Positions 12,001 to 62,617 of a stretch of 64,000 nt of DNA are shown here, piece by piece. Origin of the DNA: Lytechinus pictus. Taxonomy: Eukaryota. The stretch covers positions 19,034,001 through 19,098,000 of the forward strand of contig NC_087246.1 in assembly GCF_037042905.1 (NCBI RefSeq). Reading direction: 5' to 3'. The stretch's first letter is position 1; each line of letters begins with the position of its first letter. The translations under genes were made by a program, and so were the position numbers. The notes under the pieces were generated by a model. It was not told where the DNA came from. It saw only the letters and a list, made by a program, of their open reading frames with translations, and ran no database searches.

Positions 12001-15000
12001 GGGGCGGTAAATGCACGCAAAGGCAGAGTGCACTTTGCGCGCTCCCTAGGGGGTGGGTGCAGGGAGGGGGAGTTTTCCCCCGTCCCGCGCGAAGCTTTCG
12101 AAGTTTCATCATATTAAAATAAAAAGAAGCAGTCTCTCTTATCTCTAGTGCCTATATCAGCTCCAATTCAATTGAATTGTGAACGCACAAAAAAGGGATA
12201 AAATGGAGGAAATTAAAATAATAATTACCCCGCGCAGAAGCTAAAGCGTTTAATCAATTTTTCGGAAAAGGAAGGATCCCAGGAAAAGGGTATTCTCCAA
12301 GCCATATTGAAAGAACAGATTTGATTAGAAACAATTTAGCGACAGTGAACATCTTTGACCTGCAAAACAGAGAACAAGGGAATATGTGCCGGGAAGAAGA
12401 TATTCCTCCCTGCGCAGAGCAATGAAACTCAGTAGCGTAACAGGCGGGGGGGGGGGGGGCAGGCAGCGGCGTAACAGGGGTCGGTGGCCAGGGGGGGGGG
12501 GGGGCAAGAGCCAAAAATTTCCCGGTCATATCATGGAACAGGCAATGGCGTCATAAGGCAAACATTTTGAGGGGGCGATATGGCGTACCGGGCAAATATA
12601 TATATATAAAAGCGAGCGAGCAAAAAATTTTGACATTTTTATTGCAAAAATCTAATTTTGTGATAGATTTTAATTATAATAGATTTTAATTTTAATGTTA
12701 AAAAGATGATATCATATTTCACCCTCCTCTCTTTCCTTTTTTCTCTCTTTTTTGTACGCCACGGTGAACAGGATTTTTGTTATGATTGTGAGCATCAGGG
12801 CGAAGCTCTATATGCTCGAGGGGGCCGAGTATGGCGCTTCTGGCAATAAGTAGCTTAATATAGGTCCCGAGAGAGCGAAGCGAGCGAGATAAAAAAATCA
12901 CCTTTTCATGAGAATCTAACATGAAGATCGATTTTTACGTGATATTCAGAAAAATATAATACACTTTCCTTTCTTTCCTCATTTTTTTTGTTTGGTTGTA
13001 GAACTTTTGGGGGCCATGGTCCAAACTCATCCATATAACAGTGCTTTATGGGTGGGGTCCAGGGCAGAGCCCCGGAACCTCTTGATATCAAAGCCATTTT
13101 GAACCTTACAGATAGCCACTTATTTTAATCAAATTGCGTGTATATTTATATAGCTTTAACACAACACATAAATTCAATGCAGTTGTGTATCGTAATCATC
13201 CAAATATTGTGAGGGGCACACCATAGCAAATGTGTAAAAATTTGTAAAAAGTCGCCAGCGAGCGAAGCGAGCCAGAAAAAAAATGGCCTGTTAAAATGAA
13301 ATTCTAATTATGTGATAGATTTTTACATCATTATAGCAAATATCATGTCATATATTTTTTTTCATTTATCTCATTTCGCTGCCTCCTTTATTTTCTTTTA
13401 TTTCCCCTTGGCTGTGGAACCACCCCCGGTACGCCAGTGCTTCAACGTAAAGCTTAATGCAGGCAGGGTCCATATAGGGGCCCGTTATAGAACCCATTAC
13501 ACGGGTCGTGTGGTCCAGTGGTTAGAGCATTGGACTCATAATCGCAAGGTTGTGAGTTCGAATCCCAACTCTGCCATTGTCTCCACTTTGATAAAAAGGC
13601 CCGAGAGTGATATCTGTCGTCTATAACGTCAGCCACTATGACTGATTAACCTAGACGTAAAATGTTTCATAGGTAATTGGTTATATACCAGCTTGGCGTT
13701 TACCAGCAAATTGCTGTCCTGCCGAGTTCCTACGAGAGTTACCACAAACAGAAACAGAAACAGAAACATTAAAGGTTACAGATGAAGAGCCCCCACTGCA
13801 CGGGGTCTTGACTCTTGGACAGAGCCTTTGGAGATTTAGCAAGTTTATGATAGACTTTCATACGACATTATGCTATATACCATCCATTTTTCTTCCCGCT
13901 CGTTATCTCAATCCTCGGCAGCCCGGTAGTGTACGTTATCTTGTCCCTATTCTTTAATTTCCAATTTAGATTTTGGCTAATTCCATTCTGCATTTATTTC
14001 CCGCTTTTGTTTGCCTTTTTGTCATCTTTAATTTATTTCCCTGTCTTACTAATCATGCTAATGTATTTTTATATCGGGGCGAATTGTTCTTTCTCACTTG
14101 TTTTTTTCCTTCCATTTCCCGTTATCTTTCCGTTTTTCCTTTTTTATGTTTTTTCTTAGTTTTCTTTTCCCTTTTCCTTTCCCTTTCCCCTTTCCCCTTT
14201 TTCTTTCCTTTCCCTTTCCCTTTCTTCCCCCCTTTTTTTTTCTTTTTCCCGTTTTATTTTATTTTCCCGGTGAGCTCCGCCAGGGGGGGGGGGGCAGCTT
14301 GCCCCCCTGCCCCCAGTGGCGTAACAAAATAATTTTGTTAAGGTATTAATTTTTTAATTAAAAAATTTAAAGAATTAAAAGAAAAACTCACAAAGCTACC
14401 TATCTTCCCCTTTGCTTTCATTTTTCTCCTCTCCTTTTCCTCTTCTTTTTTTTCTTTTTGGGGACTTTTTTAATGAGGGGGGGGGGCGACCGCTCCCACC
14501 GCCCCCGGCTACGCACCTGGTGAGCTGTAACAGGAAACTATAGTGGTTGCTGGATTGCCGTTCAGAGTGATTTCAATTATACGATTATCATGCTTTCGAA
14601 TTGACATGCTTTCAGAGTATACCCATTCGCAACATTTCAAAATGCCTAAATATTGAGCTTTATGGACTAGTCCAACCCTCTTGCCACTCGATATTAAAAA
14701 TAAAGGTATGAAAACTATTCACTACTACATATTTCTTTTCAGTAAAGGATCCACTTTGACTTTGTCACTATTATCAAGGTTGATCCGTCCCGGAGGCTTT
14801 AGGATCAACCTGTCATTGATGTTGTAGTGTTCCGACATGGGCAAATCAGGGTTTAGAGGCAGGGGCTTGAACCCTGGTGCTGTATTGTTGTGATTTCATT
14901 CTTGTCTCTGGCTAGTAGAAGACTGGGTCGGCACTCCTCAGCCTGAATGCGACGGGTAGACCGAGCTACATGTTATCGGTATCAAGCCATTCCAAGATGT

Positions 15001-18000
15001 GGTGGAAATCCATTCAAACAAGATTGGGCAGAGATCTACGCCAACACATTTATTTTAGGGAGACGACCTGGAGATACGAATCTAATAAATCTAATGCTGT
15101 TAAACCAAATTAGCTTTTTTTAAATAAGCTGTATGGAAAGGACCCAAATCATCCTTCCTGGGGGAAAAATTAGTTTCCAAGCTCTCATATTAGAAGGCAG
15201 ACCCGTCGAGAATAGTCATAATCAATGCATCTTGAAACGTCTAACTGAATTAATTAGGGTGAAGACATTATAAGCTGATAAAAAAAAAAAGGTTATTATA
15301 TTACGTTCGTTGCTACCGAAATGTCTTTTGCCTGCCGGTAATGACGTTACATTTAATTTGGTTATAACTTGTTGTACTTTCGTGCCATGATTTATGAAAC
15401 TTTTGAGAGTACATTATCAGTGAAGATGAGTTCGCATATTATTTTATTTGACTCAATTGGTTTAGTATGATATTGTATTGAACTCATATTGCCGAAATTT
15501 ATTTGAGTTTCAAAGAAAGTCGCATCGTTTTGGATACTCACATGTACAACAAACGATAGCGATACTCTTGTCCAAAGGGACCTTCCAATCGATACGCTTA
15601 TACCAGCAGCGAGTAATGTTATTCATATTAGCTGGACATCCTAGATACACAGCATCATACAAATTATTTGGTGAGGATGATATATCAAAGAGATCTCCTC
15701 CTACTGTCGTATATGCACCTATTAAGAGACAAATAGAAAATACAAGATGAATGGTGACTTCTGTTGGTTAACGAAGTAATATGCAATGGACTTTAGATAC
15801 ATTCATCATTTGTAATGGATATTCATGAGTGACCTTATCCAGTGATGTTAAAGCCTTTGGTTGAATTATATGTAGTTCACCTTAGATTATTGAATTGAAT
15901 TTATTACCAAATATATCACTGTCAGGTACAATTACATGGAATAGTACATCACATATAAACAAAACATTTGGTAATTGGAGCTAACATAATAGCAAGATGC
16001 TAATCGAGGTTAGCCCCAAGTAATGTCATTATCATAGTTTAAACAATAATTTTAACTAAATCTCAATATTGTACATCAAATACAGTACTAATTCTACTTA
16101 TTACTGTTGCAGAAAATTGTGATCATTTTTAGAGAACATATTTACACTATTTACAAAAAAAAATCTTAATTATTCATAAAATCTTTATATAGAATTTTTT
16201 GTTTTCAGGCAATATTTACCATACCAAATTAATCATAATCTTCCAGTAGCATTAATTTTAACGATTTGCTAAATATCTTGCGACTGGGGGTGTTTCTAAT
16301 ATTACTTGGCAGATGATTTCATAAAGTAGGACCAGAAAATGAAATTGATTGTTTTCCCAAATTGGTATTATTTTTGTCAAGATTAACATTTCGCTTTTCT
16401 CTATTTCTCGTATTGTAAGGATGGTCTATAAATGAAAAATAATCAATAAAACTATTCGGCAACCGATTATTCATTAAATCGTGCATAAATACTCCTATCA
16501 AATATTGGTATTGTTTGAAAATATCGAGAATATTTAGATCATAAAATAAAAGAGCAGAGTGATACGTATGATGGTTGAACGTCATTATTTTATCTATTCT
16601 TTTTTGAAGTAATAATATAGGGTTTAGGGTTGTTTTGCACAACCCACCCCAAACTTCCAGATCATACGTTATATGTGGTAAAATAAATGAGTTGTATAAC
16701 ATTACTAAGATTCTCTTTGTTACATAATTCCTCAATCTATAAAGTATTCCAATGTTTTTCCTTAACACATTGCATACAAATGTCAACCGATATTCGCTAC
16801 TCTGGGCCAAAATTTTGGAACAGTTTACCAGCCCGCCTACAAAACCCTCGTTCTTTGCAATCTTTCTCTTATAAAATGAAACTTTATTTAAATGCTCGCA
16901 CTGACAGAGATCATTGACATGTTGACATGCTTGAACTACCTTCCATTTCTAATGTTAATTAATGCACATGCCTTACCTGTTGCTCTGCTAGACAAATGTC
17001 ACTCAAGCTCTTTATATATACATGTACCAATATTACGTAATTGCGACCAGTTTACTCTGTTATTCAAATGAACTTATCTTCTAATGCCTACATTTCTTCT
17101 CCCTCTTCTCCATCTGTGTTTCTTTTTCTACTCTTAACTTTCTTATTTATATGCAATTACATATGATGTCATTACAGTACGTAACTTGTTATTTATTTGT
17201 ATCTGGCGACCCCAACTCAAGCTCTGCTTTCCGGGTTTTCGCCTCCTTCAAAATTGTGTCGAAATATATACTGTATTCGTTACTATGTCAAATATTATTT
17301 TGTATCTGTTTGAAGGAAATAAATGTGATTTTCAATCAATCAATCAACCTGTTTCTTCCCTGTAAGGTTTTTGTCGATACATATACCAAGAAATAATATT
17401 GATTCCACACACTCTAATAAAGTTCCTTTCAGTGACATTTATCCTGATATTAAAATATTTTTTTCGTCTATTTTTAAACAACATATATTTAGTTTTCGTA
17501 ACATTGATTGTCAATTTGTTGGCATTGCACCATGTTATTATATAGTTTAAATTGAGACTAATTTCTGATAAATCAATATGTTGTTCATCTCAATTGAAAG
17601 TATGAAATTAATTCGAGTCATCCGCAAAAAGACGGAAATTGAAATAATTTGAGGAGTTTGCCAGATCGTTTATATGCAACAAGAACAAAGTTGGACCCAA
17701 AACTGATCCTTGTGGAATACCGCATGAATTTGGCCTGCATTCGAAATTTACACCATCATGATTAACAAATTGCTTCCTGTTTCGTAAATAATCATTAAAC
17801 CATTCTACTGCTTTACCATGAATGCCATAGTGTTATAGTTTCATAATGAGAATAGATTGATTAATCGTATCAAAAGCTTAGCAAAATCGATGAATATTCC
17901 TACTGTCACCTTCATTCATCAGTATATCTTGTAATTTGATTAATCAGATTTATCAGTGAAAGTTCGTACTGTATCCATTTCTAAAACCATATTGGTGTTT

Positions 18001-35596: not shown

Positions 35597-36778
35597 CAGT
35601 GGCGTACCGTGGGTCACGGCATTGGGGGGGGGGGGCACGAGCAAAAATTTTGAGTCACTTAGTGAGCGCAGCGCGCCCAGTTGCCAGGTATACTGACCTA
35701 ATAGAGACATTTTAAGGACAGTGCCATTAAACGGATATGTATCTCACTGGTCAAATAATGCGAGCGCGAAGCGCGAGCTTAAAATTTTTGATATTCAGAC
35801 CTAAAAAAGGACATTATAAAATTCTTTTGTAATCATGATACGTACCTGTCTCGCTAAATAATGCGAGCGCGAAGCGCGAGCTGAAATTTTTGTAAATATT
35901 GACCCCAAACAGGAAGATTTTAAGGACTATATTTTAGGAATCCGTTAAGAGTATACACATCTCACCATAGTCATCTAATGCGAGTGCCAATAGCGCTTGC
36001 TGATTTTGTTAGAATTACATCTAAACATATGCACATAAAGCACTTGTAATCATGATTAACATACCCATCTCACTAATCAAATCTTGCGAGCGCGAAGCGC
36101 GAGCTGAAAATTTAGGAAATTCAGACATGAAGAGGGGCATTTTAAGGCTTGTTTGTAGGAATTCACGAAGACAATACGTAGTTCACTAACCAAACGGTGC
36201 GAGCGCGAAGCGCGAGGTGAAAATTTTTGATATTCAGATCAGAAAAAGGAACATTTTAAGGACTGATTCTAGGAATTCATTGAGAGCAGACATATTTCAC
36301 CAATCCGCTACTGCTAACGTAAGCACGGACAGGAAATGTTTTATATTAAGACCTTAAAATGGGGCAATCACTTTAGTCATGAAAAAGAAGCATACTATTG
36401 TACATAAAACAATAACTCGAAGTGCGAGGAAATATATTTGGCAGTTTGGTATATATTGACTTGAAAACGGAAGGTTTAGTTTTTATCAGGGTTATATATC
36501 TCGGTAAACAGACAATGCGAGCATCAGGAGCAATGAAAACATAGGCCCTGAGCAAATTATGTTTCATTAAGTTATGAAAAATGTTTCTTATGTAATATAA
36601 CATAACATATTATTATGAAATAATATAACATTATAATGAACAATAATGTCTTTATTCCCACTACGTTTCTCTTCCTTTCTCCCTCTTTTTCTCCTTTTCC
36701 CCGTTTTTTTTTTTTTTTTTTTGTCAGCCGATTGGGGGGGCACGTGCCCCCCCATGCCCCCCCGTAGTTACGCCACTG
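35597..36778. mobile_element. MITE family A copy
   Basis: CAGTGGCGTA TIRs; perfect TSD GTTATCAG. Confidence 0.92.
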
Positions 36779-37032
36779 GTTATCAGTATTATTTGTTAAG
36801 AGGATTCGTCATGATTGTCTATAGAGTTGATGAATGACTTGGTTAAACTTAAACGAAACACAACTTGTTAAATGGGTTCTTGTGTGCAATAGTATGTAAA
36901 CGTTTTAGTTAGCCAGGATTACGACGTCGTAAAAATAAGGCTTATTGGGGTGGTGTGACTACTGATAGACAGTGGCGTAACAGGCGGGGGGGGGGGGGCA
37001 GGGCGGGCAAGCTGCCCCCCCTGGTGGAGCTC

Positions 37033-38764
37033 CACTGGCGTAAATCCGTGTTGAGGGGTGGGGGGGATGACTGAAATATTTTGGCATTTTTTTTGCAATC
37101 ATGTTTTTAGATATGCAAGGAATTGTAATTGATATGTCCACAGTGGCGTACCGTGGGTCACGGCATTGTGGGGGCACCAGCAAAATCTTTGAATCACTGA
37201 GTGAGCGCGCGAAGCGCGCTCAGTTGCTAGTTATTCTGACCTAATAGAGACATTTTAAGGACAATGTCATTGAACGGATATGTATCTCACTGATCAAATT
37301 ATGCGAGCGCGAAGCGCGAGCTGAATTTTTTTAATATTCACACCTAAAAAGGGACATTATAATCAAATTTGCGTAATCATGATAGTTACCTGTCTCGCTA
37401 AACAATGCGAGCGCGAAGCGCGAGCTGAAATTTTCGTATATTTTGACCCCAAACAGCGAGATTTTAAGGAATATATTTTAGGAATCCATTAAGAGTATGC
37501 ATATCTCACCATAGTCATCTAATGCGAGTGCCAAGCGCTTGCTGATTTTAGTAGAATTACATCTGAACACATGAAACACTTTTTGTAGTCATTGCAATCA
37601 TGATTATCATACGCATCTCACTAATCAAATATTGCGAGCGTGAGCCGCGAGCAGAAAATTTAGATAAGTTAGATAATTCAGACCTGAAGTGGGGCATTCT
37701 AAGGTTTCTTTGTAGGAATTAACTTGGACCATACGTATTTCATTAACCAAATGATGCGAGTGCGAAGCGCGAGCTGAAAATTTTTGATATTCATATCAGA
37801 AAAAGGGACATTTTAAGGACTGATTTTAGGAATTCATGAAGAGCAGACATATCTCACCAATCCACTAATGCGAACGTAATCACGGACAGGAAATGTTTTT
37901 ATATATACGAAGACCTTAACATGGGGCAATCACTTTTTGAGTCATGTAAAAGAAGCATAGGCCTATGTCACTACATAAAACAATGATAACTCAAGTGCTA
38001 GGAAATATATTTGGTTTATATTGACTTGAAAACGGGATGTTTTAGTACAACAGGATTATCGTTGAACAGACAATGCGAGCACAAGGAACAATGAAGACGT
38101 AGGCCCTGGGCAAATTATGTTTCATAAAGTTATGATAAAAATGTTTCTTATGTAATGTAACATAACATAATTATAATATAATATAACATTATAATGAATA
38201 ATACTTTCTTCTTTCCCACTACGTTTCTTTTCCTTTCTCCCTCTTTTCTCTTTTTCCCCATTTCCCCGGGGTTTTTTTGGTCAGCCGATGGGGGGAGCAT
38301 GTGCCTCCCATGCCCCCCCCCCCCCCGTAGTTACGCCACTGTATGTCCATATGGCAAATACCCCTCCAATATTATTATTTTTTTTACCCCATGATGGTTT
38401 AATGGTTTTATTAGAGATTACATTAAAAAAATTTTGACATTCCATCTTAATCCCTTCCCAAAGACCCCAACATTGATGAATTGGAAGAAACGGGGGTTTC
38501 TCTTCAATGTTATGATAAGGACATAAGTATTTCGTTTGGAAATGGTGAACTGGCTCTTTATTTGCATTTTATGATTCAATAATATTGTTTTATTTGTTAA
38601 GCGGTATTTTAGGAAGAATTTTCACCAATAAAACAATTATCTCTTGTGATTTTTTTTTATTTCTTTCGTAAAAAGTGGGGGGGATGATTGTACAGGCCAT
38701 CCCCCCCTCCTCGAAAAGTGGGGGGGATATATCCCCCCCATCCCCCCCGGGATTTACGCCAGTG
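37033..38764. mobile_element. hAT-like element family C (middle element of nest)
   Basis: TIR CACTGGCGTAAATCC / GGATTTACGCCAGTG; perfect TSD TGGAGCTC. Confidence 0.92.
37141..38341. mobile_element. MITE family A copy (inner element of nest)
   Basis: CAGTGGCGTA TIRs; perfect TSD TATGTCCA. Confidence 0.92.
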
Positions 38765-40653: not shown

Positions 40654-41542
40654 AATTATCATTTTGGCTTAGAAACGGGACAATCTAAGGTTATTTTGTC
40701 ATCACATGATCTTCCTATTCCTTTAATTCCTACGCGTGAGATATTCCTTTCTGAAAAAGGGAAATTTGATTATTGAAAATTCATGAAAATGTTATTACCT
40801 TATTCATTAGTATAATAACCCTAAATAAGAGCGCAAAATTTGTTGATATTAAGGTCTAAAAACTTGACACTATAAGCACTTTTGTAATTTTGAATAGCTG
40901 CATGGGTAATATATTTTTAACAATTAATGCGAGCGCAAATCGCGAGCCGAAATTTTTGATAAATCGTCAGGAAAATGGGATTTTAAGTAGTTTGTTATAG
41001 AATTACAATAGAGGTATACATTACTCACCAATAAAAATGCGAGCGCGCAGCGCTATAGCTAATTGGTTTTGACAATCAAACCTGAAAAGGGATATTTTGA
41101 GAAATTATGGAACACACGAAGAAAAAAGGGTACTTGTCAAATAAAATAATGCGAGATGTAACACAGGTAAAAAATTTGTCAAGCAAAAAAAAATAAATAA
41201 AAGTTATCAACCAAAATTTTAGGGGGGAACCACCAAAATGTTTTGACAAGCAAAAAAAAAAAAAAAAAGGTTATCAACAAAAAAATTAGGGATCAGGGGG
41301 CCGTTCCCCCAACTCAAATTTAGGGGGGGGGGACAGGACCCCCGTCCCCCCGCTTCCACTGCCTATTTATACGTCCCTGAAACATGAATATATTTTGATA
41401 GGAGATCGAAGATATCAATAAACATTTTCAAGTGAAATGTAATTACGACTTTTTTTCAGAAATTAGTAAAATAAAAATATTGTTGCGTTCTACTTCTACT
41501 TTTGGCTTGCCATAATATAAAAACTGATGCTCTTTTCGAAAA

Positions 41543-50600: not shown

Positions 50601-53087
50601 TGAATATTCAAATAGCACATATAACCAATAAAAGAAATATATTGATATGCATAGAACATGAATAGCTGCTACTGAATATTAATGAACTAAGTCTGTTGGA
50701 AGAACCAATCAGAGAATAAGAATGTAACTTCTGTAAAGTATGTGTGAACATGAACATGAACAATAGACAAGGATCGTAGAAAAGATAGAATTTTGATTAC
50801 TAACATAAGAGAGAGGATGATCAAGAATAGTGCATATCTATAGATAGCTATTTCAGAACCCTGTTCACATTACAGCTCTACACAAGCATGACATTGGATG
50901 TAGTATATTGATCAGCTTCAATATCCCTTTCTCTGGCATTGGATTTTTTAAAATTTGTTCTGTGATATAAAAAATTTACCCTCTTAAAAAGTTGCATTGC
51001 CCTGAAAATATTGATAGCTCAGGCCTGATATTATTGGGGGTGATTATTCATGTATGTCTTTAAAGTGCTTAATGTTCCAATGTGTCAATAGATATATAAA
51101 AAGGGGTATTATTATTAAAAACTTTGTTCTGAATTCTTGCACACGACTGGTCATAATAAGTTTTAAATTATATTGCAACCTTTGTTGTTTTTTTCAATAC
51201 AGGACTTACAAGACCTCTAAAGCTTAACCTAGGTGTACCATTCAACAGAGTAGCCAAAAGGTAATTTCACTAATTCATTTTACTTCAATTTAATCAATTT
51301 GAAAAAGGTGATACCTAGCCCCATGTGTTATTCAAAGCTACCTATATTAATTTGAAACAGCCAATAGTTATGGTATGTGATATATATTTTTTTTTGCCCA
51401 GTGTTTCCTTGACATTTAAAACATTTTGATACATTGTTTAGGTTCTTTTATTTTTATTTTTGTGTTTATTTGTCAGCATGAGAGATCTTGAGATGTGTTT
51501 ACAAAGCAACGGACAGGAAAGGTATCTATTAAGTTTGGACATGAAAAAAGGTGAGTACTTTGTTGAGCTGTCTTATCATTTTGAAATGTCGCACAAGCGT
51601 TCTGCCTCAACATGAATGAAATTGATCTGATAGCAATTTCCATGAAATCTTTGATTTTGGTTCACCGTTATAGATAGTAAATTTAAGAGGAAAATAACTT
51701 TTTATATGCCCATCCCAGACGGGACGTATTATGGTATCACGCTTGGTGTCCGTCCGTCTGTTAACTCTTCCTTGTAAATGCGATAACTTCAGTTTGACTT
51801 AACCTAGGCTCATATAATTTGGTGTGTATGATACTAGCATGGATCCCAGGAAGCCTATTGATTTTGAGGTCAAAAAGTCAAAGGTCAAGGTCACAATGAC
51901 ATTTTCATCTTACCCTTCTGCAGTCCTTGTAAACGCGATAACTTCAGTTGAACTTAACCTAGGCTCATATAATTTGGCGTGTATGATTATAGCATAGATC
52001 CCAGCAATTCTATTGATTTTGAGGTCAGAAGGTCAAAGGTGTAGTCGCCACCTTCCACTTTTCTTGCTTGACCAATAACTCCATTTTCCATGTTACAGGC
52101 GAGCATATTTTGTGCTCGCCTTAGCGACACTCTTGTTTGCAATTGAGCTCTAGTCTAAAAGTGCTTTAGTGATTATACAGCAATGAGGAAATTGATTGAT
52201 CTTTTTGAAATCACAGAATTAACGTGCTTAGCATTTTTACTATGTTATAATAATGTTGCCTCGACATGCTTTAACAATATCTTGGTATAAAATTGGCTTA
52301 CAGAGTACACTGACCAGTGTGTAATTGGATAATCATTTACTTTTGCTTTATTCATTGCCTACAGAACCTTCATGAGCTTTGACTTTCATATGCACTTGTT
52401 TTACTGACTGAGTTAACTCCCTTTGCACACATTGTTAATTAGATTCCTTTGCTAATTGCCTTCTCTTGTGTGCCTCTTATTTTCTTTATGTAAAAACAGC
52501 AAATCATTATACAAAAATACAAATTAATACAATTCAAAATGCATTTGATACTACAAAATAATTCAAGATTGTGATCCATCCAGAGGCGTCGAGCATGGGG
52601 GGGCAGGGGGGGCAACCGCCCCACCAATGAAAATATTGGGGGGGCAAACATATCGTTTTGCCCCCCCAATAATTCCGCATGTGCAAAAAATAAAATAAGA
52701 TTGTAATGTTACACATAAATCAGCAAGCGAGATTGAGATACACAACTCGTTCTTCATCTAAAATCGTGCTCAAAATGTCCAGTTTTCAGATTAGAATATA
52801 AAAAAAATTCAGCTTGCGCTTCGCGCTCGCATCATTTCTGTAGCAAAAACCCATACTTTTCATGATGGAATAGGTGAATAGAATGTCCCGTTTTCAGTTC
52901 TATACCTCAAAAGAACTCCCACTTCGATTTGCAATAATCTTTTGTTGGATATATTTATTGTTCTTTATTAAAAACGTCAATTAAACTCTTTTTTTTTTAA
53001 AGATCAAAATATCAAAATTTTCAGCTCGCGCTTCGCGCTCGCATCTATTATTTTTTAATTTTTTTTAAAATTTAATTTGTTGGTGAG

Positions 53088-53125
<38 letters not shown>

Positions 53126-54773
53126 TTGTTAAGTTGAGGATGGAGAAGTAGAGACTCAACCTTCACTCGCAGATCTGCATGCAAGCATACTAGATTTTAA
53201 GAATTCTGTATCATCTAAATTGGACCAAATTGCTGCAGATATTTCCTCTATGAACAAGAGGTTTAACGACCTCAAAGAGAACGTGGACTTCAACTCTGAA
53301 CGAATCTTGGACATCGAAAAGCAAAAATTGCCTGTATTGGAAGACTCACTTCAACACAAAATTAAGTTCTTAGAACAAAAAATCATACTTCTTGAAATCC
53401 ATAATAGGAAGTCAAATTTACTTTTTTACGGACTTCAATCTACAGACGGGGAAAATGTCTACCAAGTGCTCAGAAAGGTGTTTGTCTCTCTTGGGATAGA
53501 GGAAGAGATAGCAACGCTCATAGCGATAGCTAACGCCCATCGTCTTCCAATACGGGAATCCGAAGGCCAAGCCGCCGGCGCCCAAGCACCCCCTCCGATT
53601 ATTGCAAGATTTTGCTACATGCATGATAGAAATAAGATCTTAACGGCTTTCGAAGATCAACAGAGGAAGCGTGCGAGGAGCTCCGGTGAAACCAGTCATG
53701 CTCTCACTCGAATTACAGTGCGAACCGATTTGCCGCCAGCAATGAAAATCTGCAGGTCGATCCTCGCGAATGAAGCATACAAGTTAAGGAAGGAAAAGGG
53801 AGTTTCTACAAGGATCTTTCAGAAAGGTACCGAGCTTCACCTGTTATGGAAGGAAAAGGGCACAAACAAGTGGAATAATCATGATAAGTAAGATTTAAAG
53901 TTATAGAATGGTGTGTTTCCTGTGTTTAGACTAATTACCTACTATATATATTTGATTTGATGAAGACATGAGTGTTAATACTGTAGGGAAGGGGAAGTAG
54001 CGGTATATACAGGAAATATAATTAAGGGGACCATGAACAACCTGGGATGGAAGAGAAAATGTGAAGGCAAGTGGATCATGAGTCAAATATTAGAAGTTCA
54101 AAGTTCAGGTCCTGCTTCAGCTATTTAATAATGATATTCTTAAAATTGATAACCAAAAAAGGTTGTTTATTTGTTTGTCTTAATCTGATAAAAGCCATGA
54201 TGTCATACGAGACCTTGCAGGGCCTTGTATTTCTGATTTATTATTTATATAAAAAAAAAAGGACAGTAGTAAATGCAAATGTCCTTTTGTTAGCCTGTAA
54301 TAATATTTACACAGTTTATTTTTGTTGACTAAAAGAAGAAAAATCACTATAAGGAGTAGACATGAATTGGATTAGCATGGTTTACATGTAAATAATAATT
54401 AAAAAAAGAACCGAAGACTGAATTATAAGTTAGAAACTTTAAACAGATATGAGGTTAGCAGGTATAGAAGAATATATGACTTCTAATCCATTTACATTAT
54501 GGAGGAATGCGTAAACTGTTTGTTTTTTTGGTTTTTTTTAAAGATTATTTATTATGTTTTACCACTATAGGGGAAAGGAAAAAAAAACCTGTAGTAAAAG
54601 GTACAGGGCTTTGTTTCAGAGTTGAAAAACACTGTCTGGTTTGTATTTTCAAAAAGAAGGAAAACAAAACCCTCAAAACAAACAGAAGAATGAACGAAGA
54701 ATTCACCAATGAAAGTGAAATGGAATTTTTAAGCTTTTGATGGTAAAGACAAGATTAATAAGAACATTAACCC

Positions 54774-54814
<41 letters not shown>

Positions 54815-57800
54815 CTCTTTTTTTTTCCTCTTTCCCCTGTGGTCACGAATTTCTGCTGAAGAAACAAAGATGAAAAAGATAATTATCAATGAGTTTAGTA
54901 AGTGCAGTTGCTGTTTTCATGTTTGTTTCTAACTATTTTGATTTTTTTTTTTTTTAAGCATTTAATCGCTTTTGCGTTGTTCCCTCAACTTTACAATGTT
55001 TGAATTAAAAAATACCAAAACTCGAAAATGGATTTGATTGTGATTGGAATCCTTTAATTATTGTCTAACTCGGAGGTTTCAAGTGCCCCTGTAGGATAAC
55101 AATTTCAGTTGCCTTGGAACAAATGTGAAGATAGGGATGAATAATAATGGCATTCCGATCACATTTCGGCAGTAATAGTTGGGTCGTGGGGCCACATTTT
55201 TTTTCCTGTTTAGTAGTTTGGCTCTACTTTGATTCATGAAATCTTGAACGGGCTAGGTCAGATTTGCATCACTGGGTTATTTCGGTGCCTATTGTAGGCA
55301 ATACACCAAGCAATACTAGGTAACAGGATCTCATTTTATTTCTCTTTTCGTGAATGGAATTGATGTGGCGAGCTTAGATCATGTAAATTGCATATACAAA
55401 AAAAAGGGAGAAGAATGTGATCCAAATGATATACCTATTATTGTACACTACAGTTTATGTACTGTTACAAAAATGTATAAGGGTGATTTTTCATTGCATT
55501 CAAATACGAAGTAAGTAAATGTTGGGCATTGTCATTCAGATTTGATTAGAGTAAATAGGTCTTTAGTCCTCATTAGCAAGAAAAAAAAAAGGACTGGAAT
55601 GTTGATATTATTGAATAACAGGTATATGCTTAGAGCAGTAACAAGAAATCATTCCTTCATTATTTATTCATTTCCTTTATTGTGTATGGAATGTAATTGC
55701 TTTTTACGTGCAAAGTGCAGGTGTAGTTAACCATTCACGTGTTTAGGTCTTTCAAGCTTTTTATATCTTTTTGCCCTGATTAGGGCTCTGATGCATAACT
55801 CCGGCAAGGCAAGGCTATCAGTCTTTGGAAAATATTTGTGGAAAAAAAAGGAATGCGATTTGATTAGTAATGTGTCTTAATCAAACTAAATAATACGAGG
55901 TTTCAGCTTTACAGCTTGCTTACTCTTTATTTTTGGAGCATGGAATTGATAATGGAATTTATCAGGACAGGATCCCCCCTTAATTTTTTTTTGGGGGATG
56001 TTTTGTATTCAATTATTTTTGTCATCGCAGTGGTTTTTTTTTTTTTTTTTTTTTAATGGAAGGTTTATGAATTGGTACCACAATGGCAAATAAAAATATA
56101 ATGCGCTTTATTTTCAGTGCTAGTTTTTAGTTGTGGTAAAACTGGAATTGAAGAGGAAGTGGTAAACCAGACGGGTGCAGTGTTTATCAGTCTATTCCTC
56201 AATTGCAGGAGGATCCACCCTATTCACGCATTATTTGGTTCCTATAGAATTTAATGTTGGAAATAGACTTGAGTTCTTTGGATATAATATGTTTGGGTTA
56301 TTAACTTGGTGTTGGCATATTAGCTATGCATGACCGCCAAGTTAATGGCATGGGAAAGTGTGGTTGGGTGACTGGCGAATTGTTGCTTTGGATATGTTGG
56401 ATGTTGAATGAATTTGATTAGAGTAAATAGGTCTTTAGTCCTCATTAGCAAGAAAAAAAAAGGACTGGAATGTTGATATTATTGAATAACAGGTATATGC
56501 TTAGAGCAGTAACAAGAAATCATTCCTTCATTATTTATTCATTTCCTTTATTGTGTATGGAATGTAATTGCTTTTTACGTGCAAAGTGCAGGTGTAGTTA
56601 ACCATTCACGTGTTTAGGTCTTTCAAGCTTTTTATATCTTTTTGCCCTGATTAGGGCTCTGATGCATAACTCCGGCAAGGCAAGGCTATCAGTCTTTGGA
56701 AAATATTTATGGAAAAAAAAAAGAATGCGATTTGATTAGTTATGCGTCTTAATCAAACTAAAAAATACGAGGTTTCAGCTTTACAGCTTGCTTACTCTTT
56801 ACTTTCGGAGCATGGAATTGATAATGGAATTTATTAGGACAAGCTCCCCCTCTATTTTTTTTTTTTTTTTTTTTTTTGGGGGGGGGGGGTTGTTTTGTTT
56901 TCAATCATTTTTGCCACCGCAGTGGTTTTTGACAAGGAAGGTTTATGAATTGGTATTATTATAATACACTCACTTTAAAGATATAGATGTAAAGTTGTAG
57001 GGAAATGGTGCATGATTTTCGTTGTTTGATTATCCTTACATCAATGATGTAAGAGATGTTCTAGCTAGTTGCAGCTAGACGGATAGCTAGCTGTATAGCC
57101 TTTTTCATTTTAGTATGAAGATGAATAATTTAGTAGATCGTTCTCTTTTATGTCATGTTTGCATCTGAGTAAAACCAAGAAGAGATTTCTTTGAAAAAAT
57201 CCAAACCCCCACTTTTTTATGCTTGAGCTATAGTACATGAAGTAAAGATGAGAATATTCATTCTGAAACAAATTTAGGCACATCGGAAAAGTCTCATTGC
57301 AGTTGGTTTTATGGGGGGGGGGGGTAATTTAGAAAGTAATGGAAAGGTATTTTCTTTTCTACGGTAAACCAGACAGGTGCAGTGTTAAACAATCAATTCC
57401 TTGATTTGCAGAAGGATTCATCCTATTCACGCATTATTTGGTTCCTATAGAATTTAATGTTGGAAATAGACGGGAGTTTCTTTGGATATAATATGTTTGG
57501 GTTAGGCTTAACTTGGTGTTGGCATATTAGATATGCATGACCTCCACGTTAATGGCATGGGGAAGTGTGGTTGGATGACTGGCGAATTATTGTGTTGGAT
57601 ATGTTGGATGTTGAATGAATGGGGGTGTTTGGAGTGTGATACTATGAGAGGGCGTGGTTGTATTGTGTTTTGTGTTGCCTGTTTGCATTTCATGGGTAGT
57701 CTTTCATGTCTTTCATTCATTCAGGTTCTGTTGTATTTTTCGGATTGGGTAAAAGTGTATGGATAGAAGGTTATATCTTACTTTACTCACTTTAAATGTC

Positions 57801-60800
57801 AGAGGTCTAAGAGACAAGGCTAAAAGAAAAAACATTTTTGAATTTTGCAAAAATAAAGGGAGTAATATTGTGTTTTTACAGGAAACCTATAGTACGGAAG
57901 AGGTTGAAGAGAAGTGGAAATTAGAGTGGAATGGGCCTATATTGTTTAGTCATGGAACGAACCATAGTAGAGGTGTTTCAGTTCTCATTTCTCCAAATTT
58001 AAATATAAAAATGGATAATGTTATTTTTGATGAAAATAGAAGATACGTCGTTATGAAGTTTGAATTTCAACAATCTAAAATAATTTTAGTTAATTGTTAT
58101 TTCCCCACAAGAGATAAGGAGAAGATGCAAATTGAATTTTTAGAGGAACTAGATAAATGTATTTCAAAGCTTTACAGCTCTGAAGAAATGATAATTATTG
58201 GGGGAGATTTTAATACAATAATGAATGGAGATTTGGATTATTTAGGTCCAAGAATCTTTTATAAAAACAGATTTAACAAGAAATTTGATGGATTTTTAGA
58301 TAGATTCGGTTTAGAAGATATATGGAGGAGGATGAATCCTGAAAAGAAACAATTTACATTCAGGCAAAAATGTCCTATTATGCAAAGTCGATTGGATTAT
58401 TGGTTCGGGTCCTCTGCTTTTCAGCATTTAGTTAATGGTTGTGATATTGTAACATCAATCACGCCAGATCATTCGGGCGTTCTGCTTCAATTAACAAGCA
58501 GTGTAGACAAGCCACACTTAGGCAATTCATATTGGAAGTTCAACAATAGTCTGTGCGCAGATCAGGAATTCGTGAATTTATTCAAAGATAAAATAGTTGA
58601 ATTAAAAAAAGAATGGCTCCCGAAAATAGAAGATAAATTATTGTTGTGGGATTTTTTAAAAATGAAAATGAGGGAGATTATTAATAAGTACACAAAGAAA
58701 AAAGCAAAGCTTAGGAAACATGAAATTGAAAAATTAGAGGAAGATATAAGAAGTTTGGAAATCCACCTATCGACTCAGCCTTCGAGGAAAATACTTGATG
58801 AAATGGAGGAGAAAAAGTCTAAATTGAACAGATTGTTTGATTATAGCCGACAAGGTGTAAAAATCCGATCAAGAGCTTTTTGGTTTGAGGAAGGAGAACA
58901 AAAAACACAATATTTTGAACAGTTATTAAAATCAAACAAACGGAAAAGTGTAATAACAGAAATATATGATCAAGGTGAACAGACTATAAAAGATAGGAGT
59001 GAAATATTGAAGAAGATAAAGTCATTTTACGAAAAATTATATTCATTGAATGAAGTGATTGTAAATGAAAACTCTTTTTTCCTGAAGGATATTCCTAAAT
59101 TATCCAAAGAGAGTCGAGATATTTGTGAAGGGAAAATTACTATTCAGGATTGTTTAAGTGTTTTGAAAGAAATGAAATTTAATAAAACCCCTGGAAACGA
59201 CGGTTTTACTGTTGAATTTTATTACACCTTTTTGAATTTATTGGGGGGATTTTTGGTGGAAGTGTTAAATGAAGTGTATAATAGGGGATTATTAGCAACT
59301 TCACAAAGGCAGGGAGTGATTACACTATTAGAAAAGGAAGGCAAAAACCCTTTATACATTCAAAACTATAGACCAATCACGCTTTTAAATGTTGATTACA
59401 AGATCTTATCAAAGGTACTAGCAAAAAGATTGAAAAAGGTTCTGAATGAGATAATTCATATTGATCAAATAGGGTATGTTGAAAATAGGAACATTGGAGA
59501 TGGTGTGAGATTAATCGATGATATTTTATTTCAGTCCTCTTTTGGAAATATTGGATATTTGATTACGGTGGACTTTGAAAAGGCTTTTGATTCTGTTTCC
59601 CATGATTTTCTTTTTCAGACTCTTAAATTATTTGGATTTGGCCAGTCTTTCTGTTCTTGGGTTCGTGTTTTATATACAGATATAACTAGTTGTATTATGA
59701 ATGGAGGTTATTCCACTGGTTATTTTGATATAAAACGAGGGGTAAGACAGGGGGACCCCATTTCTCCTTATCTGTTTTTGCTCTGTATAGAAACACTAGC
59801 TTTGGCAATAAGAAGAGACGCTCTAGTTGAAGGAATTCAGTTTGGATCTCATGAAATTAAGCAAATATTGTATGCCGATGATATCACTCTGTTTGTTAAA
59901 AATAGCAATTCTGTTAAACGGCTTAAATATCTTTTGGAAGAATTCGAAAAAGTGAGCGGTCTGAAGATAAACAAAGGGAAAACAAACTTTTTTTGGATGG
60001 GAAAAGATCAAGACAGACCTCAAACTCCGCTATTTGGAAATTTGGTTCAGCAAATTAAAATCTTAGGCGTTTATTTCTCTCTAAATGTAATAATAAAAGA
60101 AGATCTAAACTTCAAAGAGATACTAAGCAAAATAAAAAGACTTTTGGGATGGTGGAAACAAAGGGATCTAACCCTTATGGGTAAAATACAATTGTTGAAA
60201 AGTTATGCATTATCAAAATTAAATTACGTCTCGTCACTTTTAGTTGTTCCTAAGTGGTTGTTCGTTGAGGTGGAACGGATCACTTTTGAGTTTTTATGGT
60301 CAGGTAAAGACCGTATAAAGAGAAACATTATGTATCAGGATTACTCACACGGTGGGTTAAGAATGATGAATTTTAAGTTGTTCATAAAGGCCCAACGTCT
60401 AATGTGGCTGAAACGTCTATTATACGGGGAACGCAATGCTGGGTGGAAATTGTATTTTGATTTCTGTTTTAGATCACTCGGTGGGAGACTGTTATTTCTT
60501 TGCGATTTTGATATTTGCAAATTAACACAGACAATGCCACAATTTTATTCTGAAATGCTGAAGGCTTGGCAAGATATGAGAAAATATAGATATACAAAAG
60601 AGGAAGTAAACCCGATTATATTTAATAATAAGAATGTATGTGTAAGAGGTAAAATGATTTTTGATATTGATCTTTATAATAAGGGAATATACACTGTAGA
60701 TCATATTTTTGATAACGGGGTTGTGAGACCTGTGGCTTATTTTCAAAATCTTGGGGTAACCGCAGATGAACTGCTCCACATTATTGATATAGTACATGCT

Positions 60801-62209
60801 ATTCCAATTACTTGGAAAAATGCCTATAGCTCTATTAAATTTATAAAGATTGACGATGAGAACTTCAATGTTAATTTGAATATCAGTAAGCTGGAAACTA
60901 CTTTTGAGGTGATTAAATTAAAAATGATTTATAGTTGTTTTGTTGAAACTTTACGGGAAACTTATAATTTAACATTGAAAGATAAAAACATTAATTTGAA
61001 TTTTACGGATGTTGAAATGTGTAATAGGCTTGCCCAAACCAGGAGCATAACTTTGATTAGGAAACAAAGAGAATTCCAGTTCTTACTTTTACACGGGGCG
61101 ATTTATACCAAAGAACAGTTATTGAGATTTGGGTATGTTAAAGACAGTTTATGCTCTTTTTGTGGCAGAGAAACCGAATCATACATTCATATTTTTCTAA
61201 ATTGTCCCAAGGTAAAACCTTTATGGGAATTTTTCATTAAATATTTCTGTATGTCTGAATTAAGAGATTTAGAATGGAGAGATATACATTTGGGATTATC
61301 TGGAAGTACGAATAGAAATAATTGTGTAAACTGTATAATCTTTTTCATCAAATATGCCATTTTCCAATCCAGAACTAATGGTCAGGTTCCTTCCTGCCAT
61401 AAAATACAAAAATATATTGCGGAACGTAGGGAGGAAGAAAAATGCTTAGCTATAAAATCGGGCAAATTGAGTTTGCATGTAAAGAAATGGGAAGAACTGA
61501 AGGTGAATGAGGCAGTGAATGCAAACAGGTGTGAAGCGTCTGCTGGTGCTGTGAGTATGTAATGGTATGTCCGCGTGTGAATGCGAGTGTGCAATGGTAT
61601 ATGTCCGCGTGTGAATGTGAGTGCTTGCTGCCAGGGATGGGGGGGGGGGGGGGGGTTTCCTATCTCCATGGTTAGCAAAATGTTTGAGTAGATCCAAAAA
61701 GAAAGAATATTTTGTTTGGGGTGAGGAAAAGGTTTTGTTTGTTTTATTTTGTTGATGTTGTGTTTTGTTTTGTTTTCGTGTGTGCTTTATATACAAAATC
61801 TTTATTCAGATTATTGTATACTTTCTAAGAATAAACATAGAGACTTTTTTTTTTCTGTATTGTCTTACAAAAGTTGGAGGAATGAATATACATGTATAAG
61901 TACTTTTTTTTTATTATGGGATAACCTCTTCACTTAAAAAAAGTCTGTACTTTTGATTTTTCATCATACAATACGGTATTATTATACAGTAAATACATGT
62001 GAAATTACGAGGTTTTTGTTATTGGTATTATGGGTTATATCTGTTCGAAAAATTTATATCAAGATGTATATTATTTCATATGTTATATTGCTGTATAAGT
62101 GTACTTCACTTTAATTTGCATACATGTATTTGATTTATTACCCTTGTACATGAAAAATGTAATAGTATCTGAATAAAGGCTAAAAAAGCAAGAGAAAAAA
62201 AAAAAAAAG

Positions 62210-62241
<32 letters not shown>

Positions 62242-62617
62242 CTATATATATATACATATAGGCATATGTGTGCGTGTGTGTGTGTTTGAGTCTGTTTGTT
62301 TTGTGTGATCGAGCGCCTTTGGAAAGTTGATTCATGATTTTGCCCCCCCAATCTGAAAAATGGACGCCCCTGGATCCATCATAATGGTTCATTCTTCTCA
62401 TCCGTTAAAAATTATATCTCCTGATAAAGCCAGCTTCCGTGTCAATGTAATATTGATCTAAACAAGTTTTCAGTGATAAATTTTCTTGTGTGATCTTGAT
62501 ATCCTAGGTTGTATTGATATTGTGATTCATCATGATAGTACATCAGAAGATGTCCTTAAAGCTTGTCTCCAGGCTGAGATCATCATGTATACAACATTCC
62601 ATCTCCATGGAAACAGG
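41543..62617 (+). CDS. RUSF1: RUS1-family protein (RUSF1/C16orf58, DUF647); 12 exons visible, 373 aa, 3' incomplete
   Basis: Exons 41543-41677, 45012-45089, 45585-45699, 46351-46396, 47089-47121, 47495-47600, 48020-48121, 48834-48904, 50137-50327, 51203-51260, 51477-51550, 62508-62617, all GT/AG and phase-consistent. Family motifs FLPQGYPDSVS.DYLEYQIWD, LDSDAKRWRLFAD, GVAGGATRAALT.HQA..NNMADVSAKDGSQET, LHLYANYRAV...ETLN. Confidence 0.95.
41810..44705. repeat. A-B-B'-A' direct-repeat complex in RUSF1 intron 1
   Basis: ~440-bp near-identical repeats at 41833-42270 and 44260-44705; diverged ~700-bp repeats at 42272-42975 and 43288-43997. Confidence 0.85.
45012..45089 (+). CDS. RUSF1: RUSF1 exon 2
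   Basis: VVFLPQGYPDSVSKDYLEYQIWDTVQ. Confidence 0.95.
45585..45699 (+). CDS. RUSF1: RUSF1 exon 3
   Basis: AFSSSITGTLSTHAMLKGVGVGD...TITWLLR. Confidence 0.95.
45712..46101. mobile_element. hAT-like MITE in RUSF1 intron 3
   Basis: TIR TAGTGCTGG/CCAGCACTA; 8-bp TSD GTTTCCAA/GTTTGCAA (7/8 match). Confidence 0.75.
46351..46396 (+). CDS. RUSF1: RUSF1 exon 4
   Basis: DGTSMTGRIAFAWYQG. Confidence 0.92.
47089..47121 (+). CDS. RUSF1: RUSF1 exon 5
   Basis: SSLDSDAKRWR. Confidence 0.92.
47495..47600 (+). CDS. RUSF1: RUSF1 exon 6
   Basis: LFADIMNDAALCIEL...SSLFK. Confidence 0.93.
48020..48121 (+). CDS. RUSF1: RUSF1 exon 7
   Basis: SMVGVAGGATRAALTMHQARRNNMADVSAKDGSQ. Confidence 0.95.
48834..48904 (+). 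CDS. RUSF1: RUSF1 exon 8
   Basis: ETVVNLAALFVGLIITP. Confidence 0.92.
49020..49413. mobile_element. TTAA-flanked MITE (Kolobok-like)
   Basis: TTAA|AGATAAAT ... ATTTAGCT|TTAA. Confidence 0.65.
50137..50327 (+). CDS. RUSF1: RUSF1 exon 9
   Basis: LHLYANYRAVTCVVMETLNQSRF...VNKKEPV. Confidence 0.95.
51203..51260 (+). CDS. RUSF1: RUSF1 exon 10
   Basis: LTRPLKLNLGVPF; cag/gtaatt, phase fits. Confidence 0.85.
51477..51550 (+). CDS. RUSF1: RUSF1 exon 11
   Basis: MRDLEMCL...ERYLL; cag/gtgagt, phase fits. Confidence 0.85.
51700..52138 (+). mobile_element. HINE-like repeat with two ~155-bp tandem units
   Basis: T-rich ends, GTCC repeat, duplicated CCTTGTAAA.GCGATAACTTCAG unit, AAGGTCAAGGTCA, 3' CTCTTGTTT. 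Confidence 0.6.
53089..53125. repeat. (GT)n microsatellite at the 5' junction of the retrotransposon
   Basis: Seen directly; continues as (TA)n/(GT)n at 62209-62285. Confidence 0.95.
53133..53891 (+). CDS. L1-type ORF1p (coiled coil-RRM-CTD), N-terminally truncated
   Basis: Frame open from 53133 with no initiator (first ATG 53250); heptad region, then RKSNLLFYGL, AHRL, PPPIIARF, DLPP motifs. Confidence 0.85.
   Translation, partial: VEDGEVETQPSLADLHASILDFKNSVSSKLDQIAADISSMNKRFNDLKENVDFNSERILDIEKQKLPVLEDSLQHKIKFLEQKIILLEIHNRKSNLLFYGLQSTDGENVYQVLRKVFVSLGIEEEIATLIAIANAHRLPIRESEGQAAGAQAPPPIIARFCYMHDRNKILTAFEDQQRKRARSSGETSHALTRITVRTDLPPAMKICRSILANEAYKLRKEKGVSTRIFQKGTELHLLWKEKGTNKWNNHDK
55541..57620 (+). 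repeat. Tandem duplication within the inter-ORF spacer
   Basis: 55541-56076 matches 56413-56956; 56161-56412 matches 57363-57620. Confidence 0.92.
57759..61562 (+). CDS. L1/Tx1 ORF2p: APE endonuclease, reverse transcriptase, CCHC domain; intact 1267 aa
   Basis: NVRGL, LQET, GGDFN, SRLDY, PDH; YRPITLLNVDYK, DFEKAFD, GVRQGDP, YADD, LGV; CSFC..ES..HIF..C. Confidence 0.97.
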   Translation: MDRRLYLTLLTLNVRGLRDKAKRKNIFEFCKNKGSNIVFLQETYSTEEVEEKWKLEWNGPILFSHGTNHSRGVSVLISPNLNIKMDNVIFDENRRYVVMKFEFQQSKIILVNCYFPTRDKEKMQIEFLEELDKCISKLYSSEEMIIIGGDFNTIMNGDLDYLGPRIFYKNRFNKKFDGFLDRFGLEDIWRRMNPEKKQFTFRQKCPIMQSRLDYWFGSSAFQHLVNGCDIVTSITPDHSGVLLQLTSSVDKPHLGNSYWKFNNSLCADQEFVNLFKDKIVELKKEWLPKIEDKLLLWDFLKMKMREIINKYTKKKAKLRKHEIEKLEEDIRSLEIHLSTQPSRKILDEMEEKKSKLNRLFDYSRQGVKIRSRAFWFEEGEQKTQYFEQLLKSNKRKSVITEIYDQGEQTIKDRSEILKKIKSFYEKLYSLNEVIVNENSFFLKDIPKLSKESRDICEGKITIQDCLSVLKEMKFNKTPGNDGFTVEFYYTFLNLLGGFLVEVLNEVYNRGLLATSQRQGVITLLEKEGKNPLYIQNYRPITLLNVDYKILSKVLAKRLKKVLNEIIHIDQIGYVENRNIGDGVRLIDDILFQSSFGNIGYLITVDFEKAFDSVSHDFLFQTLKLFGFGQSFCSWVRVLYTDITSCIMNGGYSTGYFDIKRGVRQGDPISPYLFLLCIETLALAIRRDALVEGIQFGSHEIKQILYADDITLFVKNSNSVKRLKYLLEEFEKVSGLKINKGKTNFFWMGKDQDRPQTPLFGNLVQQIKILGVYFSLNVIIKEDLNFKEILSKIKRLLGWWKQRDLTLMGKIQLLKSYALSKLNYVSSLLVVPKWLFVEVERITFEFLWSGKDRIKRNIMYQDYSHGGLRMMNFKLFIKAQRLMWLKRLLYGERNAGWKLYFDFCFRSLGGRLLFLCDFDICKLTQTMPQFYSEMLKAWQDMRKYRYTKEEVNPIIFNNKNVCVRGKMIFDIDLYNKGIYTVDHIFDNGVVRPVAYFQNLGVTADELLHIIDIVHAIPITWKNAYSSIKFIKIDDENFNVNLNISKLETTFEVIKLKMIYSCFVETLRETYNLTLKDKNINLNFTDVEMCNRLAQTRSITLIRKQREFQFLLLHGAIYTKEQLLRFGYVKDSLCSFCGRETESYIHIFLNCPKVKPLWEFFIKYFCMSELRDLEWRDIHLGLSGSTNRNNCVNCIIFFIKYAIFQSRTNGQVPSCHKIQKYIAERREEEKCLAIKSGKLSLHVKKWEELKVNEAVNANRCEASAGAVSM
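62172..62208 (+). terminator. Retrotransposon poly(A) signal and A-tail
   Basis: AATAAA followed ~18 nt later by an A14 run. Confidence 0.75.
62508..62617 (+). CDS. RUSF1: RUSF1 exon 12
   Basis: CIDIVIHHDSTSEDVLKACLQA; tag/gtatgt, phase fits. Confidence 0.85.

Follow-up and report, generated by a model that had tools for sequence, protein, structure and literature searches.

The DNA analysed here, a 64,000-nt stretch of the Lytechinus pictus genome (assembly GCF_037042905.1, NC_087246.1, positions 19,034,001–19,098,000, forward strand; hereafter the window), carries at 53122–62208 a long interspersed nuclear element (LINE) of 9.1 kb whose two open reading frames (ORFs) are separated by several kilobases of non-coding DNA. 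From 5′ to 3′ the block comprises a truncated ORF1, this inter-ORF spacer, an intact ORF2 and a 3′ untranslated region (UTR) ending in a poly(A) tail (Table 1). We lean towards reading it as a composite LINE, in which an L1-type ORF1, an integral multi-kilobase spacer bearing internal repeats and a Tx1-like ORF2 are combined in a single insertion.

Table 1. Features of the LINE insertion and of its host transposon (positions in the window), followed by the ORF1–ORF2 distances of related elements
Feature	Position or distance	Strand	Basis or remark
Left terminal inverted repeat (TIR) of the host non-autonomous DNA transposon (like a miniature inverted-repeat transposable element, MITE)	52573–52590	+	13-mer ATCCAGRGGCGTC
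(TG)16 microsatellite adjoining the 5′ end of the LINE insertion	53089–53121	.	Tandem Repeats Finder (TRF)
ORF1, 5′-truncated, predicted L1-type ORF1p (coiled coil, RNA recognition motif (RRM), C-terminal domain (CTD))	53133–53891	+	252 codons plus stop; translation
GTAAGA, 5′ splice-site-like motif overlapping the ORF1 stop	53888–53893	+	Sequence; kept in L022
Inter-ORF spacer, non-coding	53892–57758	+	3867 nt, 34% GC, 104 ATGs
GTGTGT, alternative donor-like motif	53911–53916	+	20 nt past the stop (ATG/GTGTGT, G at 53911); slightly better score; also in L022
T-run (about 50 T), then CT-rich stretch, in the spacer	54777–54833	+	TRF
Spacer repeat unit 1 of a direct duplication	55540–56413	+	Self-comparison
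Spacer repeat unit 2	56412–57620	+	Self-comparison; about 430 nt extra at 56931–57362
3′ splice-site-like pyrimidine tract	57700–57724	+	tctttcatgtctttcattcattcag/G, AG at 57723–57724, 34 nt before the ORF2 ATG
ORF2, intact, 1267 aa: APE, reverse transcriptase (RT; YADD present), C-terminal zf-RVT	57759–61562	+	Pfam, translation
3′ UTR, 646 nt	61563–62208	+	AATAAA at 62172–62177, A14 tail at 62195–62208; read from the sequence
Microsatellite on the 3′ side, (TA)n followed by (TG)n; may represent a duplicated target	62209–62304	.	TRF and sequence
Right TIR of the host DNA transposon	62363–62380	−	Inverted partner of the ATCCAGRGGCGTC 13-mer
ORF1–ORF2 gap, P0002	3.0 kb	same strand	
ORF1–ORF2 gap, P0005	5.2 kb	same strand	
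ORF1–ORF2 gap, P0019	2.2 kb	same strand	
ORF1–ORF2 gap, L001 (L. pictus)	4.1 kb	same strand	
ORF1–ORF2 gap, L002/L003 (Diadema)	3.9 kb	same strand	
ORF1–ORF2 gap, L005	3.0 kb	same strand	
ORF1–ORF2 gap, L019	4.0 kb	same strand	

The boundaries of the insertion can be read directly. ORF1 homology starts right after (TG)16, the far end carries AATAAA and A14, and beyond it lie (TA)n(TG)n and then the unique TIR pair; the block is therefore a single 5′-truncated, poly(A)-ended LINE insertion inside a MITE, as the original prediction implied in placing ORF1, spacer and ORF2 in one element. Only one poly(A) and one microsatellite pair are present, and downstream of ORF1 there is no second ORF2 or tail. 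The 13-mer ATCCAGRGGCGTC of the host TIRs occurs in the 64 kb only at 52578 (+) and 62363 (−), against 0.03 occurrences expected. A (TG)n tract adjoins the insert at both ends (3′ match at 62264–62304), and because both flanks consist of TG/TA microsatellite no exact target-site duplication is definable. The host itself, made up of 52573–53088 and 62305–62380, is a non-autonomous DNA transposon with 13-nt TIRs, and its inner motif TTCAGCTCGCGCTTCGCGCTCGCATC recurs in arrays elsewhere in the window (about 3175–3640, 35753–37829 and 40919–41101). Within the LINE, the 3′ UTR includes a run of about 17 G at 61640–61660 and a (GTTTT)n array at 61732–61776.

ORF1 has no start codon and begins directly after the microsatellite. 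Its homologues are 250–300 aa long and carry at least about 20 additional N-terminal residues; the frame is thus 5′-truncated, a point absent from the original prediction. Pfam gave no match to the ORF1 sequence. An AlphaFold model built with 37 homologues (pLDDT 89) consists of a single long helix and, after it, two alpha/beta modules, and its best matches in the PDB are the human LINE-1 ORF1p trimers 2ykp, 2yko and 2ykq (E 3e-8), from which the protein is predicted to have the L1-type ORF1p fold of coiled coil, RRM and CTD. Relatives were found in 49 matching protein clusters, one of them an NCBI L. pictus protein, whereas alignment against viral contigs returned none. In the ORF1 tree, the window protein and that of a second copy, L022, belong to a well-supported clade of nine members.

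The product of ORF2 combines Exo_endo_phos (residues 10–222, E 2.8e-10), RVT_1 (residues 528–771, E 1.1e-38) and zf-RVT (residues 1100–1156, E 1.3e-9, above the Pfam cut-off), and about thirty clusters of relatives at 50–73% identity have the same domains. The domain content of ORF2 and the fold of ORF1p together support an L1/Tx1-type LINE, in agreement with the earlier classification; this label is based on domain content and unnamed relatives rather than on named reference elements, and does not set Tx1 apart from L1. More distant Tx1-like elements from metagenomes, at 30–45% identity (L024, L029, L031, L033, L041, L047, L080, L085 and L095), have a homologous ORF1 (25–32% identical) located 370–810 nt, mostly 410–480 nt, upstream of ORF2. 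Closer relatives differ in what precedes ORF2: in five lineages at 45% identity or more (L004, L013–16, L023, L026 and L038), no ORF1 tail was seen within the 136–3250 nt of upstream sequence available, and in L004 this upstream DNA amounts to 3.25 kb, non-coding and repeat-bearing.

The spacer itself shows no sign of coding capacity. It contains no ORF longer than 85 aa, the ten longest spacer ORFs have no Pfam match, and Rfam, applied to 52500–62500, found nothing inside it, its three weak sub-threshold matches all lying in the microsatellite flanks. A large part is a direct duplication, with 55540–56038 matching 56412–56930 at 92% and 56161–56413 matching 57363–57620 at 90%; the repeats stop about 140 nt before the ORF2 ATG. 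Its beginning can be compared with L022, a 982-nt contig of a Tara metagenome that is about 93% identical to the window element and is truncated elsewhere, at about window position 53490. L022 passes the ORF1 stop, which reads GAT ATG TAA GA with GTAAGA kept, and continues for 450 nt into the spacer to the end of the contig, at about 90% identity. Because this independently truncated copy shares it, the start of the spacer is part of the element; and since L022 shares GTAAGA as well, unspliced RNA was copied at least twice. The comparison thus indicates that the spacer is integral to the element and present in the RNA that is reverse-transcribed, with unspliced RNA as the template.

Long spacers also appear in the relatives. 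Wherever the context of an ORF1 relative is readable, an ORF2 follows on the same strand 2.2–5.2 kb downstream (Table 1). Two such elements, L005 (7.6 kb) and L019 (8.6 kb), extend from about 300 nt upstream of ORF1 to about 360 nt downstream of ORF2, as expected of whole elements. On this comparison, a multi-kilobase ORF1–ORF2 gap appears to be a trait of the whole group of echinoderm LINEs with a window-type ORF1. In the spacers of different lineages blastn detected no shared sequence; internal repeats were nonetheless present in all ten related spacers or ORF2-upstream regions compared, with units of about 100–1200 nt that are 67–92% identical. Such direct or tandem repeats occur in the spacers of the window, L001, L002, L005, L017 and L019, and also upstream of ORF2 in L004, L013 and L038, each lineage having its own. 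Two further observations concern individual copies. L002 and L003 are nearly identical ORF1–spacer–ORF2 elements with the same ORF1 protein in two Diadema genome assemblies. In the other L. pictus element, L001, no ATG lies close to the beginning of ORF2 (14845–17919), whose frame opens at 14845 and whose listed start is TTG, and NCBI annotates only ORF1 as a gene (LOC135154054); this may be a decaying copy with ORF1 kept or expressed.

A length of 3867 nt with 104 ATGs rules out a short gap of the reinitiation type. Because of these 104 AUGs, ORF2p would be beyond the reach of scanning or ordinary reinitiation, and some bypass would be needed for its synthesis. Two routes can be envisaged, each of them tentative and rated by us about equal: (a) splicing from the motif at the ORF1 stop to the acceptor that shortly precedes ORF2, so that 6 nt would remain between the ORFs, and (b) internal initiation, with a promoter or a ribosome entry site located in the 3′ part of the spacer, which bears repeats and is T/G-rich.

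Route (a) was the substance of the original prediction, and the letters and coordinates on which it was built proved exact on re-reading. The end of ORF1 reads CAT GAT AAG TAA GAT, with the GT of the donor at 53888–53889. The candidate intron, 53888–57724, measures 3837 nt, a multiple of 3, with CATGATAA/GTTCTGTTG as the predicted junction. Its removal in silico, repeated here with the same outcome, rebuilds AAG, adds FCCIFRIG and gives TAA AAG TGT ATG in the frame of ORF2. The two sites are not equally strong. We scored them with an approximate matrix and ranked them among all GTs (517) or AGs (569) of the element: the donor AA/GTAAGA is ordinary (rank 43, with 3.9 sites per kb scoring at least as high), and the acceptor is strong (rank 2, with 0.55 comparable sites per kb). 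Taken singly, the placement of either site has a chance probability of a few per cent.

The donor-like motif recurs well beyond this copy. In a matrix-free count over the interval −5 to +15 around the ORF1 stop, GTRAG was found in 6 of 15 lineages (the window, L017, L002, L005, L024 and L031) against 2.9% expected (binomial P 2e-6); the interval was picked after inspection of the data, which makes the P value optimistic, but the excess is nonetheless large. Among echinoderm lineages the proportion is four of six. In the distant Tx1-like L024 and L031, GTAAG or GTGAG lies on or beside the ORF1 stop. From these counts, the splice-donor-like motif at the ORF1 stop appears strongly enriched, a recurrent feature needing explanation. 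The acceptor fares less well: long-spacer elements show a mild excess of such sites in the 120 nt preceding the ORF2 ATG (P 0.016–0.076 in four of five), but the Tx1-like relatives show no enrichment, and no acceptor is conserved there. Of the two splice sites, whose conservation the prediction had proposed as a check, the donor is kept in L022 and resembles the GTRAG enriched at ORF1 stops, and the acceptor is absent from the Tx1-like relatives.

These signals would be accounted for if the 3837 nt were a spliceosomal intron that gates ORF2p, the unspliced RNA serving as both ORF1p message and template and the spliced RNA being a bicistronic message with a 6-nt gap suited to reinitiation. This is a live idea, although one that we hold only tentatively. 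The GT...AG ends and the exact arithmetic suit it, as do an acceptor that is second-best in the element, a donor kept in L022, the GTRAG excess, and matrix donors with P 0.004–0.055 in four of six echinoderm lineages together with the mild acceptor enrichment. With the best- or second-best-scoring pairs of sites, the gap left after splicing would be 6 nt in the window, 11 nt in L005 and 27 nt in L002. Several observations weigh against it. Two of the six echinoderm lineages have no good donor; by matrix score L019 lacks both sites and L001 has a weak donor only. In the Tx1-like ORF2 relatives no acceptor lies close to the ATG, and the acceptor of the window sits in a T/G-rich tract of a kind often found ahead of such ORF2s (also in L031 and L026), which makes acceptor-like matches at this position cheap. 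With cis-preference, moreover, a spliced and fully functional copy would be expected to displace the form with the spacer, unless something essential resides in that spacer. Spacer-less copies, for which the prediction had proposed a search, were absent from the roughly ten lineages whose contexts were read, a small sample rather than a genome-wide one. In humans, retrotransposition of spliced L1 RNAs gives rise to spliced integrated retrotransposed elements (SpIREs; PMC5860796), and efficient splicing should therefore leave intron-less copies here too.

It is possible, though again doubtful, that the family is real and that its donor-like motif works without splicing, for example by binding the U1 small nuclear ribonucleoprotein and so suppressing premature polyadenylation within the spacer, which is AT-rich, with ORF2 expressed by route (b). 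An enrichment of the motif without a matching conserved acceptor is what such a role would give, and the spacer persists in all copies seen. The internal repeats found in every spacer or ORF2-upstream region, and the sequence immediately before ORF2, which is T-rich and AG-free for more than 200 nt in L024 and forms T/G tracts in L031, L026 and the window, are compatible with internal initiation. The repeat structure and the T/G-rich tract are, however, all the support that route (b) has, its promoter or ribosome-entry activity being a prediction; the spacers share no sequence between lineages, and repeats are common in non-coding parts of LINEs, functional or not.

Whichever way ORF2p is made, the composite LINE that we favor must also be reconciled with the ancestry of its two ORFs, which is discordant. 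Where the DNA of the ORF1 relatives is readable, ORF1 is paired with a different ORF2, a protein of 1000–1046 aa with APE and RT, an N-terminal extension and no zf-RVT, which is 24–26% identical to the window ORF2 over the RT only and which we take to be CR1-like from its motifs and the (ATGAA)n tail of L002. Elements of this kind, with an L1-type ORF1p, a CR1-like ORF2 and spacers of 3–4 kb, are represented by L001, L002/L003, L005/L006 and L019–L021, from sea urchins and marine metagenomes. Their two ORFs co-diverge (ORF1 43–61%, ORF2 41–52%), and their ORF1s are 41–50% identical to that of the window. The same type of ORF1 thus appears to be combined with two unrelated clades of ORF2, and because the ancestries are discordant, an exchange of ORF2 must have taken place, whether within this copy or earlier, in an ancestor of its clade. 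The original prediction had reasoned that different partners or short spacers in other copies would betray two separate elements or a secondary insertion; different partners are indeed found, and the long gaps are kept in all ORF1 relatives with readable context.

These findings count against the composite being an established family: the CR1-like partners themselves, the nesting of the window ORF1 clade among ORF1s that have them in the tree, and the fact that no second copy was seen joining the spacer to a window-type ORF2. They would be expected of a one-off chimera or rearranged composite, in which a CR1-like-partnered LINE supplied ORF1 and the beginning of the spacer, and a separate Tx1-like element, with ORF2 alone behind a long 5′ UTR containing repeats, supplied the rest. 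The two could have been joined by template switching of the RT during one insertion, or one could have inserted into the other with a deletion afterwards; in either case the splice-like sites would not function as a pair here. Tx1-like elements of suitable structure exist, since L004 and L013 have 1.0–3.2 kb of non-coding, repeat-bearing DNA upstream and no ORF1, and the two tandem units right upstream of the window ORF2 resemble the monomeric 5′ UTR of some LINEs, such as that of mouse L1. We nevertheless consider a chimera rather unlikely. An independent 5′-truncated LINE must reach its own 3′ end, yet neither a CR1-like ORF2 nor a second tail is present, and the poly(A) and the microsatellite pair are each single; it would also be a coincidence that so strong an acceptor lies 34 nt ahead of the ATG. 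Three weak pointers favor a family, the first being that missing 3′ end. The contig of P0002, whose ORF1 is 61% identical to that of the window, carries an APE gene followed by an RVT_1 gene at nt 1174–1857 from the start of ORF2 and a span of at least 3.48 kb, a layout that fits a Tx1-like ORF2 (RT 528–771) better than a CR1-like one (RT 599–845, 3.1 kb) and would place a Tx1-like ORF2 behind a close relative of ORF1. The clade depths also match, at 58–67% for the window ORF1 clade and 56–73% for the Tx1-like ORF2 group. Word shares in a second species (0.14–0.17 for the ORF1 part, 0.16–0.18 for the whole element) do not discriminate one family from two. From these pointers we tentatively infer that the exact pairing of ORF1 with a Tx1-like ORF2 is a family rather than a single event.

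A broader version of the splicing model would have a multi-kilobase intron between ORF1 and ORF2, its 5′ splice site on the ORF1 stop, maintained in these echinoderm LINEs, with a gap of 6–27 nt after splicing and a retrovirus-like division of labor that allowed two ORF2 clades to be used; this we regard as improbable. Two other possibilities were rejected. In a pair of independent LINE insertions lying side by side, the upstream one would be without a 3′ end of its own, and a spacer inserted later into a short-spacer element is at odds with the 450 nt shared by L022 and with the long gaps of all relatives.

The composite LINE bears on how this class of element is thought to work. On the current view a LINE needs its ORF2 a short distance after ORF1, because ORF2p is made by an unconventional restart on the same RNA. 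Here a whole group of marine-invertebrate LINEs appears to keep 2–5 kb of fast-changing non-coding DNA between the two. In the literature we found no description of LINEs with multi-kilobase inter-ORF spacers, no repeat library having been compared. If the gap is spliced, this would be the first LINE with splicing-dependent replication; if ORF2 has an internal promoter or ribosome entry site, ORF1 and ORF2 would be semi-independent modules, which would explain the exchange of modules between LINE clades. Either outcome bears on the control of ORF2p dosage.

The window element is like other L1/Tx1 LINEs in its ORF2 domain set, ORF1p fold, AATAAA and poly(A), and 5′ truncation, and differs in its inter-ORF distance, 3.87 kb as opposed to 370–810 nt in the distant Tx1-like relatives; in mammalian L1 the distance is tens of nucleotides. 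Among retroelements, Penelope-like elements are noted, in a passage of PMC4209133, for retaining spliceosomal introns. Their genomic copies likewise keep an intron-like segment and point to unspliced RNA as the template. They are unlike the window element in having a GIY-YIG endonuclease and a telomerase-like RT, and their intron does not lie between two ORFs. We know of no link between that intron and the expression of LINE ORF1 and ORF2. In human L1, which gives rise to spliced RNAs and to SpIREs (Larson et al. 2018, PMC5860796), the LINE RNA also contains a donor and an acceptor, working there and candidates here. In the human case splicing removes parts of the 5′ UTR or ORF1, is harmful and yields dead-end copies, whereas here it is proposed as needed for ORF2p. 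In simple retroviruses, unspliced RNA is both the genome and the gag-pol message, and a spliced RNA serves the downstream gene. The same division of labor would apply to the window element if the intron reading holds, as an analogy only, since the element has no long terminal repeats and no packaging signal is known for it. Finally, template switching by LINE RT produces chimeric retrocopies such as U6-L1, and the known chimeras are single dead copies. The window element shares with them two unrelated parts, one tail and the discordant ancestry of ORF1 and ORF2; it differs in that its long-spacer layout recurs in many lineages and that both ORF1 and ORF2 are open.

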